Below, one piece after another: positions 3,313 to 9,979 of a stretch of 64,000 nucleotides of DNA. The stretch covers positions 1,835,479-1,899,478 of the forward strand of contig JAWQFM010000001.1 in the NCBI GenBank assembly GCA_033442325.1. The letters run 5' to 3'. A program made the translations under genes and the position numbers. The notes beneath the pieces are model-generated. The model was not told the DNA's origin, searched no databases, and worked only from the letters and a program-made list of their open reading frames with translations. Position 1 is the stretch's first letter. Every line of letters begins with the position of its first letter. This DNA is from Salpingoeca rosetta (taxonomy: Eukaryota; Protista; Choanoflagellata).

Positions 3313-3901
3313 GCACCACAACGTGGACATTGTATCAACGTGAGCAGTTGGGTGAACACAAGTCCGAGCACGCAAAGGCACAGGAGTCGGGATGGCAAGC
3401 TTGGGGGGATTGAACGTACGATGGGCGCGTCATGTGTTGGACGACTTCCGCTAGCGTGGCACTGTTGAAGAACGGCCCCTTGTTGACGTAAAACTCAGGC
3501 CCCTGGCGCTCGATCATAAAGTGGAGCATTCTGCCTTGCGCGGACAAGGAGATGGCAAACTTTCCGGCTCCCGGATCCTTCAGTCGCACAAGAAACAGAC
3601 CCTCTGTGGAGCTGCAAAGAAATGAGGCAACAGCGACGCGCCGCCACCAGCAGCAACAGGGTTGAGGGGCATGAGCGACAACCAACAACGCACTAAGAAC
3701 ACGTTTTTTTGGGGGGGGGGGCAGGAGATCATGTCAGGACAAAGCAATGGCTTGCATTCGAGATCAACAAAACGGCGTTGACACACACGCCGATGTCGTG
3801 CAGACACCCGCCATTCCCCAGCAAAACGGCACCAACCCATTGCTCTCCAGCAGCGCCTCTGCCTCTTGGCGGCTCAGGTAGCCGTGAAGCCAGGGCTCCA
3901 T
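437..3901 (-). CDS. SH2 domain + Pro/Gln-rich linker + PTB/PH-like domain adaptor protein (about 10 exons; 3' end unresolved, may extend past the window start)
   Basis: ATG at 3901. The spliced model keeps frame across the GT-AG junctions. SH2: [22 protein letters not shown]|[52 protein letters not shown], with the FLVR motif. Exons at about 2692-2852 and 2055-2427 are Pro/Gln-rich. Exons at about 1691-1780, 1403-1471, 1147-1217, 843-901 and 437-522 give [75 protein letters not shown], a PTB-like pattern. Confidence 0.75.
630..729. other. Assembly gap (100 N) within an intron, next to a (CA)n run
   Basis: Run of n characters. Confidence 0.99.
980..1087. repeat. Intronic minisatellite of about 32-36 bp (GTGTGTGCATCTTTGTACACGTGCGTGCAT, 3 copies)
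   Basis: Three tandem copies read directly. Confidence 0.8.
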
Positions 3902-4509
3902 GTCTGCCAGTGTTGGAAGAACACACACACACAAGAAGGACAAGGAAGGGCACACGCACCGAAGAAAGAGCATTTGCGAGCATACGGGAGATGGAAAGGG
4001 GGAGGGGGCAAAACAAGCACCGATATCGCAGGTAGTAGTATTGGATGGATGAGCTGACGCAAGCTAGCAAGACGCACACACAACAGCAGGCAAGCCAGTG
4101 TGGTCTGCACAGCGATATCATGTACCCCCTTCCTCCCCAAGCCAAACCAGGACAACCCAGCACAGGACAACCTCGCACAGCAGTATCCATCCACACGCAC
4201 AGCACCAACAAACACCCGCGCACACCAGGACACAGCTGGCCCAGCACACCCAATTCTCAAGGCAGCAAAGAAAGCAATCCCGCCTCACCGCTGCAGTCTT
4301 TCTCGTTTGTTGGGCAGGGTGGACGGCTACGAAAAATGGTGCAAATCATCCACTAATAACCAACACTGCGTCTCGTCTTGTGTGCGCTTTGTGTTTTGGT
4401 TTGGTTGTGGTGAGTTCCACTTCTCCTGCTCACACCAGCCAGCATTCAGCCCCACACCCTCACTCAACACGTTTGCTTGCTTTCGTTTGTCCTCACGTCA
4501 CTCGCTCAG

Positions 4510-6072
4510 ATGCGCGGGATGAGCGCCGTGGTGGCTGTGGTGTGCGTGGCGGTGGTGATGGTCGCAGTCGCGCCGTCGTTGCCCACAGTGCGCGGCTGTG
4601 ACGTTGGCGCTTGCACGTTCTACAACTGCGTGGACGAGCAGACGCAGTGCGGCCCAAGCGGGTACGCCATCGGCTACGGCTTGAAGTACTGCGACAAGTT
4701 CACGGCCGCACAGTCCAGCTTCAGTGACCAGGGCAAAGTCTGGGTGGCGGAGACGAAGCAGTGCCTTCAGCAGGAGCTGGAGGACTACGTCACCGCCATG
4801 CAGCGGGATCCCGGCGCGTCCTTCCCCTTTGACAAGGCGCAGTGCGACAGCATGCGCAGGGCCGCCATGAACTCGCATGTCAAGTGCTACACGGGCGGCA
4901 GCGTGTCCGTGTGCTCGCTGCGTGTGTCGGACTGGGTTCGCATTTTGAAGACCATCCACGAGGCGTTTGGCGACGCCTTCCTCAACACGGTGAAGCAGAG
5001 CCTGTCCACGGCCAAGCAGTGCGCCGGCTCCCTGTTCGCCTCCTTTGGGTCGGGCCTGTTCCGGTTTGCTGTCAATCCAGATGACTCCCGCTCTCGCCGC
5101 GATTGGTCGCCGGAAGACTACGCCGCACACCGGGCGGCACTGCGCCAGCACGTGAACCGCGTGCGCATGCAGCTGTCGCAGCTGCTGCACGTGGCCGAGT
5201 CAAACATCTTCGTGGACGTGTCCCAGGTTGGGGAGATGGACGGGAACGGCATGGACACGTACGTGGATGGCCCAGAGGACGCGATGCACATGGACGATCT
5301 TCCCACCACCAGGCGCACGTTTGATATTGTGGTCCACATCCTCCACGAGGGCGGGCGGGCCCACAACCTCACGTCTGCGGTCGTGGATGCGGTCGACCGC
5401 GGCACCGTTGATCTTCGCGACCTGCTTCCAAGCGAGCACCGCGAGAGCGCTGTGCTGCTTGGCTCTGGTGCCTCCCTTGGCGGCGCACAGGCCCTTGCTG
5501 CCGCCTCCTCCCCAACAGATGCTGCGTTGTCGTCATCGTCATCACCGCGCTCCGATGCGCGTACAGGCCAGCCAGGCGTTTCCACCGGCGCTGTGGCGGC
5601 GATTGCAGTCGGCTGCGTTGCAGGCACCCTGCTGGCGGTTCTTGCGTTGCTTCGCGTCACAGGGTGCGTCATTGTGTATGTGCGTGTGTGCGTGTGTGCG
5701 TGTGTGCGTGTGCGTGTGCGTGTGCGCGTGCGCGTGCGTGTGCGCGTGCGTGTGCGTGTGCGTGTGCGTGTGCGTGCGTGTTGATGACATACGTGCATCG
5801 TTTGTTTGGTCTATCAATCTCTGTCAGTCAGTCAGTCACTCACACACACACACACTCTCTCTCTCACTATCACCCTCTTTGCGTGTCAATGTCTACATGT
5901 CGCACCAACCACTTGGTTTGCCATCTTGGTCCACTCTCACCCATTGATCTGCCCGCTGTACACTGCCTTGGGATCTCACGCTTGTAGGCATCGTGTTGTG
6001 CGGGAGACGGCGAAACCCTCTGCCGATTCAAAACATCAGCTGCTGCTGGACAACGCACACAACGACATCTGA
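4510..6072 (+). CDS. Type I membrane protein with an N-terminal stanniocalcin-like domain (exons 4510-5663, 5988-6072)
   Basis: Signal peptide MRGMSAVVAVVCVAVVMVAVAPSLPTVRG. Ten-Cys domain containing CDKFTAAQSSFSDQGKVWVAETKQC and CDSMRRAAMNSHVKCY, with stanniocalcin-like Cys spacing. RSRR site at 5089-5100. TM segment AVAAIAVGCVAGTLLAVLALL. A phase-2 intron (GG|gtgcgt..tag|G) leads to the tail HRVVRETAKPSADSKHQLLLDNAHNDI*. Confidence 0.8.
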
Positions 6073-6810
6073 AGCACCACGTCCTGTCACATGATGGCGA
6101 CCCAGCATCGCGCCCACACACGTTACAGCATTCTGTTTGTTCACTTGATTTAGTAGCTGAAGCGCGCAAAACAACCACACCATCGAGATTCGCTGCTTGG
6201 CACCACTTCCCCGCAACACACACACACACATGCGTGCACACTCGCTCACACACTGTGTGTTGTCTCTTGCTTTCCCTTCTTGCACTCATCACTCACTCGT
6301 CATCAACTCCTCCTTGTTCTCCACTTTTCTTTTATACTTTGCGTGACACACACACACACACACACACACAATGGCCGTGCCTTGCAAGTTACCGAGTGCC
6401 CAATACACAAACACATACGCACGCACGCTGCCTCTTCGTCTGTACCACAAACAGAAATGCTTGTTCACATACATGAGTGCGCGCTCAAGCCACAACAGCA
6501 CAGCAACACGAGCTGCATTCATCCAAGAGTCTTGGCACATTGCACTGTGCAGCCCACCAGTGCAGCCGCTCAAATCACACAACAATAACAACAATGCACA
6601 GCACAAAACGCGTCGAATGTTGAGGTAAGATATGGTGAAAATTCTACATTCTTCTGCTTTGCCAGCACCACCCACCCGCCCGCGAAGCATTCATTCACCA
6701 CCCCCCGACCAGCAGATAGCATCACACGTTGCACACCTACGCAGGCCGGAACGAGACAGTGTTGGAACCCTCCTTGCTCTCCGCCCAACAACCGCTTACC
6801 CACCAGCATC

Positions 6811-9979
<3,169 letters not shown>

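Follow-up and report, generated by a model that had tools for sequence, protein, structure and literature searches.

A gene of the choanoflagellate Salpingoeca rosetta encodes a protein, very probably membrane-anchored, whose head is a genuine but divergent homologue of the stanniocalcin (STC) fold and which may be cut by a proprotein convertase into two chains that stay together. The gene occupies positions 4510-6072 (+) of the window, by which we mean the whole stretch of 64,000 nucleotides (nt) that was analysed (GenBank assembly GCA_033442325.1, contig JAWQFM010000001.1, positions 1,835,479 to 1,899,478 of the forward strand). Its spliced product is identical letter for letter to S. rosetta PTSG_00389 at NCBI, a protein of 412 residues that is annotated as "hypothetical protein" and carries no precomputed Pfam domain. 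The original prediction, made from the DNA letters, described a membrane-tethered STC-like protein with a furin site and read it as a sheddable ligand precursor in a unicellular relative of animals. The host is such a relative, and the STC-like head, the basic site and the anchor were all recovered; direct release of the head appears less likely, and a protease-inhibitor role is unsupported. We see about an even chance that PTSG_00389 is a convertase-processed, two-chain, membrane-tethered STC-fold protein and not simply a shed ligand.

The identity of the head follows from its cysteines, from profile searches and from structure prediction. The ectodomain contains ten Cys (residues 30, 35, 40, 47, 61, 85, 112, 126, 135 and 171) with the spacing 4-4-6-13-23-26-13-8-35, exactly as it had been read from the DNA, and the only other cysteines of PTSG_00389 are found at position 12 in the signal peptide and position 369 in the transmembrane helix. 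Residues 22-205 were compared by HMMER with 1.84 billion representative proteins, which yielded 1469 relatives at E <= 1e-3, of which 458 lie at E <= 1e-10; the ten Cys are invariant or nearly so in 80-117 relatives. When a profile built from 117 domain sequences was compared with the PDB, human STC2 chains alone were matched (E 3.9e-9 to 1.1e-8), with Cys5-Cys10 in register with the STC2 cysteines and with gap-free alignment to human STC2 over the C5-C6 (23 residues) and C7-C8 (13 residues) intervals. The AlphaFold2 model of the head, calculated on the 117-sequence alignment, is all-helical, with a predicted local distance difference test score (pLDDT) of 84 that exceeds 90 over most of the head and a predicted template-modelling score (pTM) of 0.79. 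Alignment of this model with VIA-align gave Z 9.7-10.7 for STC2 chains (root-mean-square deviation (rmsd) 3.4-4.0 over 126-131 residues) and 5.7 for the next chain. In an exhaustive fold scan of 48,161 representative chains Z >= 8 was reached by STC2 chains only (Z 10.7, next 7.1). Since the authors of the STC2 structure reported no structural homologues of its fold (PMC9579167), a structural match unique to STC2 is informative.

A Cys-rich helical domain that is unrelated to stanniocalcin and resembles it by chance would account for the weak outcome of some direct comparisons. PTSG_00389 itself scored 14.8 bits against Pfam Stanniocalcin (PF03298), below the gathering cut-off of 23 bits (E 0.019), and a direct phmmer search of PDB sequences returned no STC but chance matches only (lactate dehydrogenase, collagen VI). 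Foldseek with the head model placed STC2 chains in the top four places, with weak E-values of 0.03-0.6 and none at E <= 0.001. Of the two checks that had been suggested for the assignment, the Pfam match failed at the threshold for the protein itself but held for its relatives, 41 of the 80 best of which contain PF03298 at E <= 0.01 (best E 8.3e-17), and the Foldseek comparison gave the expected ranking but became clear only with VIA-align. The profile match to STC2 and nothing else, the Pfam matches of the relatives, the uniqueness of the structural match and the shared Cys register all argue against chance resemblance, which we regard as very improbable and, for practical purposes, refuted. 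A six-frame search of the genome with PF03298 found no match, PTSG_00389 included, but the controls were silent too, which makes this blank uninformative; nearly all matches in word-indexed protein searches were proteins of S. rosetta itself.

Judged by its sequence, the head is of the non-chordate STC type. The 13-residue interval between Cys4 and Cys5 contains GYAIGYG (family consensus GYxxGYG), and a hydrophobic insertion of about six residues between these cysteines is the hallmark of non-chordate STC homologues (Roch & Sherwood 2011, PMC5654410). In the same 2011 survey choanoflagellates were listed among the groups lacking STC, and so were arthropods. The named nearest relatives of the head come from Amoebozoa (Cavostelium, Pyxidicula), fungi (Scutellospora, Melanomma, Rasamsonia, Lojkania), animals (a bivalve, amphioxus and a fungus gnat) and bacteria (Bdellovibrionia, Cloacimonadota). 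A maximum-likelihood tree of 123 domain sequences, in which 59 of 118 inner forks were open, the search was unfinished and the S. rosetta rows stood on long branches, decides neither between vertical descent and transfer nor on whether the anchored forms make up one clade.

The family also occurs in other domain contexts. The best-scoring relative (P0002, E 7e-39), a protein of 357 residues from the fungus gnat Pseudolycoriella hygida encoded on a 156-Mb contig, has two tandem STC-like domains. In the proteins P0032, P0063, P0106, P0126 and P0161, which stem from metagenomic and Logan sources and are presumed to be bacterial, an STC-like ten-Cys domain is fused to the extracellular contractile injection system (eCIS) core domain PF13699 (E 1e-29 to 1e-34). 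As this core domain is a marker of eCIS cargo, the STC fold may be an effector or targeting module in these fusions. The Branchiostoma proteins P0019, P0020, P0022 and P0153 contain one and a half to two STC-like domains and bear the source names lysozyme g or phospholipase A2-like, and one Branchiostoma STC-like protein has a Peptidase_M15_4 match (E 5e-9). These amphioxus contexts are all cell-wall or membrane-lytic, unlike that of a hormone.

The region between the head and the membrane had been described as a stalk. A second AlphaFold2 model, covering residues 22-356, contains in this region the elements β1 (180-187), α1 (201-226), β2 (233-240), a disordered loop (242-265), β3 (270-277), α2 (284-296) and β4 (315-321). 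The resulting order β-α-β-β-α-β is ferredoxin-like, the pLDDT of the juxtamembrane domain is 58-83, and RSRR lies in the loop between β1 and α1, where pLDDT is 49-64. When model residues 157-305 were used in the fold scan, ferredoxin-like folds were found at Z 5.6-7.1. In Pfam, residues 180-330 gave no match at E <= 10, SEA and Notch NOD/NODP included. The assignment of β1 to this domain was also examined by cutting PTSG_00389 in silico at RSRR and giving the two halves to a second predictor for assembly. The split-chain score was 0.64 against 0.02 for the best control; in the calibration of this check, 51 of 78 solved complexes attain the mark, as do 2 of 108 mismatched pairs. Contact agreement in the runs was at least 59% and the partner pLDDT at least 61, and residues 180-186 were placed antiparallel to 270-277 (β1-β3) with an expected error of about 1 Å. 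Two predictors in this way place a β-α-β-β-α-β domain, with RSRR between β1 and α1, in what had been taken for a stalk. Instead of a free linker, the models predict a ferredoxin-like membrane-adjacent domain that contains the basic site.

RSRR was confirmed at residues 194-197 and is the sole R-X-[KR]-R motif in PTSG_00389. In a shuffle test R-x-[KR]-R arose by chance in about 1% of cases in the 34 residues after Cys10 and in about 11% anywhere in the ectodomain. In the alignment columns where S. rosetta has SRSRR followed by DWSPEDYAAH, metagenomic relatives have basic motifs followed by D..[DE]D..AH, for example LYFVVVQVPEKIRRKR followed by DTLTDDELAH, with variants that contain RSKR, RKKR or RWKR. 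The strict motif is present in L018, L027, L028 and L030 (RRKR, RSKR, RKKR, RWKR) and in both S. rosetta paralogues, while L017, L019 and L045 have only a dibasic KR at the site. Among the metagenomic relatives the P1 Arg and P2 Lys are fixed and the number of residues that follow varies, which is the usual appearance of processing sites. The suggested search of the genome for furin gave two furin-like convertase genes. The first (L004), which shares the contig with PTSG_00389 and lies about 147 kb upstream of it, combines a Peptidase_S8 domain (E 6e-53) with a P domain (E 9e-20) and also has a furin-like Cys-rich region; the second (L005) encodes S8 and P domains.

A search of the genome with the family profile recovered PTSG_00389 and two paralogous loci. 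PTSG_09770 (contig C31; L009:865-1992 (-); 376 residues) is 25% identical to PTSG_00389 over head and stalk and has the same layout of signal peptide, head, stalk, transmembrane helix and tail, with RHRR in the same loop. Its ectodomain contains only nine Cys: compared with the C30 copy, a short deletion (SCHG) has removed the first, so that one Cys has no partner. PTSG_11388 (contig C30, partial; L010 and L011) is frame-broken, being split over two frames with an assembly gap inside.

Relatives with a comparable architecture were also found outside S. rosetta. The metagenome contigs carry intron-bearing eukaryotic genes whose products have a signal peptide and an additional Cys-rich N-terminal part before the STC-like core, and after it a hydrophobic strand, the basic site and a helix. 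The Atlas clusters closest to them are for the most part molluscan (scores 0.92 and 0.90) and one identical metagenomic gene is located on a contig labelled BRYA16-1; the Ga0056/Ga0209 contigs may derive from samples of gutless-oligochaete symbioses. The motif-bearing metagenomic relatives are probably lophotrochozoan. The extra N-terminal module of about 90 residues (CDPDTGPAG...YQCGTC...CYYQCM...), present in L018:701-1100, L027:1069-1480 and L045:858-1300, has no Pfam match. Two short transcript-like contigs encode P0024 (342 residues) and P0029 (348 residues), both with a signal peptide, the head, a comparable stalk, a transmembrane helix and a short basic tail. In P0129 (286 residues) and the L045 protein (439 residues), small residues precede a hydrophobic C-terminus, an ending that resembles a glycosylphosphatidylinositol (GPI) signal. 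The contig of P0129 (L014) has two more genes upstream on the same strand (833-1621 and 2245-2598) without Pfam hits. In an ESM Atlas shape search, model residues 1-306 aligned to a cluster of mostly cnidarian proteins of 446 residues (template-modelling score by query 0.56), which is a lead only. Tethering of an STC-fold head by way of this juxtamembrane domain thus extends beyond S. rosetta.

The sequence comparisons and the models suggest how PTSG_00389 could be processed. It would be a type I glycoprotein in which the STC-fold head, extracellular or lumenal, is mounted on the ferredoxin-like domain, followed by a Ser/Ala-rich spacer, the transmembrane helix and a tail of 31 residues. A furin-like convertase in the secretory pathway would most likely cut after RSRR197 in the β1-α1 loop. 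As β1 stays with the head after such a cut, the ectodomain would then consist of two non-covalently joined chains, with the N-terminal fragment (head and β1) held in the sheet of the membrane-bound C-terminal fragment. Release of the head would be a second event, caused by force, unfolding or a second cut. We consider cleavage at RSRR somewhat probable and, if it occurs, initial retention of the head is favoured to a similar degree. Any ligand or signalling role of PTSG_00389 is, like the cut and the cohesion of the two fragments, an inference. Several points weigh against this two-chain model. P0024, P0029 and P0129 have the same architecture without the basic motif, which means that processing is not universal in the subfamily, and the third S. 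rosetta copy, PTSG_11388, has TRR only. The split-chain test was made on two halves of one chain and speaks for membership of β1 in the domain, not for stability after a cut; the model of the membrane-adjacent domain, with its pLDDT of 58-83, is moderately confident and was built on a locally shallow alignment. At the level of the transcript, no read across the intron junction was above the reporting threshold in two RNA runs, each of which contained three partly aligned reads. Finally, we know of no established function of an STC head in any non-chordate.

According to the original prediction, a furin cut at RSRR would directly free an approximately 18 kDa head that could diffuse and act in signalling or in protease inhibition. 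The conserved RxRR motif, the presence of convertase genes and the position of RSRR in a low-confidence, probably exposed loop are all consistent with such shedding, and vertebrate STCs are soluble. However, the strand N-terminal to RSRR is predicted to be integral to the juxtamembrane sheet, and because a cut would leave the head holding a strand of that domain, an 18 kDa fragment is probably not simply set free. The inhibitor variant also lacks a partner. Three Peptidase_M43 matches were found in the S. rosetta genome, and within the approximately 3 kb examined at each locus the open frames had a catalytic-domain match only; the full pappalysin architecture (LamG, M43 catalytic domain with LNR, SCR, LNR3) was not found there. 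Full pappalysins have been reported from Metazoa only, and invertebrate STCs were judged unlikely to be pappalysin inhibitors (PMC11925022). Because PTSG_00389 has neither a dimerisation Cys nor an equivalent of STC2 Cys120, and because no full pappalysin was found, a pappalysin-inhibitor function is unsupported. Direct shedding appears unlikely to us on these grounds. The other alternative is a surface or endomembrane protein that is never cut and whose head acts while covalently anchored, as a receptor, as an adhesion or binding module, or as a lumenal factor in endocytosis or phagocytosis. Such a role would suit P0024, P0029 and P0129, in which head, stalk and anchor occur without the motif, and it would agree with the fusion of STC-like domains elsewhere to lytic or effector modules. 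In addition, Leu-Leu pairs close to acidic residues occur in the tail of each S. rosetta paralogue (HQLLLD, EEHLL), which faintly suggests endocytic sorting. Against it stand the retention of a basic motif at one loop while its flanks diverged beyond recognition and the rarity with which shuffling produces the motif in that stretch, and we regard an uncleaved protein as a minority possibility.

The gene model on which this discussion is based is summarised in Table 1. In two stranded RNA-seq runs of 2026, reads cover 4367-5706 and approximately 5841-6242, with the first mate on the - strand throughout, which in most stranded libraries indicates a + strand transcript. Depth is zero at 5707-5840, where reads are skipped at a microsatellite, and the intron is called because of its GT..AG ends, this gap in the reads and the NCBI model. 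The part that encodes the transmembrane segment adjoins the ectodomain within exon 1 and is covered by reads; transcripts that skip this segment had been named as a finding that would speak against the anchor, and in the RNA the segment is present. The anchor and the tail of about 30 residues that had been predicted agree with the hydrophobic segment and the 31 residues that follow it. A type I membrane topology with a short tail is therefore highly probable. A GPI anchor was considered for PTSG_00389 and rejected in view of the 31 hydrophilic residues C-terminal to the hydrophobic segment.

Table 1. Features of the PTSG_00389 gene and its product, with positions in the window.
Feature	Position	Strand	Basis
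5' untranslated region (UTR), approximate start	4367..4509	+	RNA depth from bin 4367-4433 onward
Coding exon 1, residues 1-384 and two bases of codon 385	4510..5663	+	Translation; identity to PTSG_00389
Signal peptide region, residues 1-29; hydrophobic core 6-21	4510..4596	+	Kyte-Doolittle window 2.28 at residues 1-19
Stanniocalcin-fold head, Cys30-Cys171, ten Cys, all-helical	4597..5022	+	Profile, AlphaFold2 model, VIA-align
Predicted ferredoxin-like membrane-adjacent domain, residues 180-321	5047..5472	+	AlphaFold2, fold matches, split-chain prediction
RSRR, residues 194-197, proprotein-convertase consensus, β1-α1 loop	5089..5100	+	Sequence; low-confidence loop in models; aligned columns in relatives
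NLT, residues 286-288, sole N-glycosylation sequon, on α2 of juxtamembrane domain	5365..5373	+	Pattern scan
Ser/Ala/Pro-rich spacer, residues 322-359, predicted disordered	5473..5586	+	pLDDT 30-55; composition
Transmembrane helix, approximately residues 360-381	5587..5652	+	Top 19-residue hydropathy window 2.54, from residue 362; basic hydrophilic tail after
Intron, GT..AG ends, (GT)n-rich past donor	5664..5987	+	Sequence; annotated product; zero RNA depth 5707-5840
Coding exon 2, end of 31-residue cytoplasmic tail (residues 382-412, with HQLLL) and stop	5988..6072	+	Sequence; NCBI product
3' UTR, approximate end	6073..6242	+	RNA depth up to bin 6176-6242

Just past the donor the intron contains a long (GT)n/(GTGC)n microsatellite followed by CA/CT-rich runs (window 5664-5790 and 5830-5870); window 6215-6235 and 6345-6370 were noted along with these. 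If the intron were retained, the frame would continue through the repeat into a Val/Arg/Cys-rich tail with a stop at 5784. Some depth over the last 100 nt of the intron was seen in one of the RNA runs. The neighbouring genes encode an SH2 domain (3338-3688 (-); Pfam SH2, E 7e-8) and an intron-split UDP-glucose/GDP-mannose dehydrogenase (7079-7868 (+); PF03721, two exon pieces), and we saw no sign of a functional link of either neighbour to the STC-like gene.

The occurrence of the STC family outside animals was already known; what is new is its presence in a choanoflagellate and the conserved layout of head, site, domain and anchor. Standard Pfam annotation misses the divergent STC-fold genes of S. 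rosetta, of which there are two to three. Choanoflagellates are the closest living relatives of animals. These genes fill a gap in the distribution of the family, and the layout of PTSG_00389, in which a head is followed by a conserved convertase site, a folded juxtamembrane domain and an anchor, had not been described and is common to relatives that are probably animal. The findings argue against extending hormone or pappalysin-inhibitor functions back to pre-metazoan STC members, and they provide a testable processing model in an organism with editable genes. To our knowledge, neither a receptor nor a primary biochemical role has been established for stanniocalcins outside the vertebrate PAPP-A axis. 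A more speculative possibility, which we hold to be rather unlikely, is that tethering and convertase processing were the ancestral state of a holozoan branch of stanniocalcins and that the soluble vertebrate hormones arose later by loss of the domain and the anchor. The STC-fold head would then first have been a non-covalent cap, similar to that produced by Notch S1 cleavage, on a ferredoxin-like juxtamembrane domain with a transmembrane or GPI anchor. If this is true, the primary partner or receptor of stanniocalcins could be sought directly in S. rosetta, which is genetically tractable.

Comparison with known systems shows where PTSG_00389 agrees with them and where it differs. With vertebrate STC1 and STC2 (PF03298; 8A7D, 8A7E, 7Y5Q, 8HGH) it shares the secretory-pathway location, the ten-Cys all-helical domain and the C5-C6 and C7-C8 spacings, and the model agrees with the STC2 structure at Z about 10.7 and rmsd 3.4-3.5 over 127-128 residues. 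Sequence identity to vertebrate STC is only about 15%, and PTSG_00389 has a GYAIGYG-type insertion of five to six residues between C4 and C5. The 11th Cys that dimerises vertebrate STC is missing, as had been suspected, with no ectodomain Cys beyond Cys171, and the C6-C7 interval has no additional Cys that could correspond to Cys120 of STC2, a residue that originated in early vertebrates (PMC11925022). Whereas STC2 continues after Cys10 with dimerisation helices, which have no counterpart in PTSG_00389, the latter continues with the β/α domain, the transmembrane helix and the tail; the vertebrate hormones are soluble and secreted, whereas PTSG_00389 ends in a C-terminal membrane helix and 31 further residues. 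In the profile alignment Phe, Gln and Glu/Asn of STC2 stand opposite Trp78, His123 and Asp141, three residues that are invariant or almost invariant among the non-chordate members, and their replacement in STC2 is a further reason against transferring vertebrate functions to PTSG_00389.

The ten-Cys core and the hydrophobic insert between Cys4 and Cys5 are shared with the non-chordate STCc-type homologues of invertebrates, fungi, amoebae and a few bacteria, and identity to the amoebozoan, fungal, mollusc, amphioxus and bacterial members is 35-44%. The STCc-type proteins described so far are treated as soluble secreted proteins of about 150-250 residues (PMC5654410), whereas in PTSG_00389 the core is followed by the convertase motif, the folded juxtamembrane domain and the anchor. 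For the juxtamembrane domain, the MAD12 domain of PCDH15 (6C13, 6EET, 6BXZ) and the C-terminal domain of TROP2 (7E5N) are similar in having a β-α-β-β-α-β fold just outside the membrane, as is predicted for PTSG_00389. They align at Z 5.6-6.5 and rmsd 3.5-4.6 over 93-109 residues, but enzymes, RRMs and Cas6 score equally well, so that this is a likeness of fold class and not kinship.

The closest analogy for the proposed processing is provided by the furin (S1) site in the heterodimerisation domain of Notch and by SEA-module proteins such as MUC1, in which the cut chains can stay joined non-covalently. PTSG_00389 has no Pfam sequence match to SEA or Notch modules and no GSVVV autoproteolysis motif. 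SEA also differs in the order of its strands and in where it is cut, between β2 and β3, whereas the proposed cut in PTSG_00389 falls between β1 and α1. Still, in the model presented here a loop would be cut within an α/β juxtamembrane domain of a type I membrane protein, with strands on either side of the cut, which would resemble the arrangement in Notch S1 and SEA proteins.

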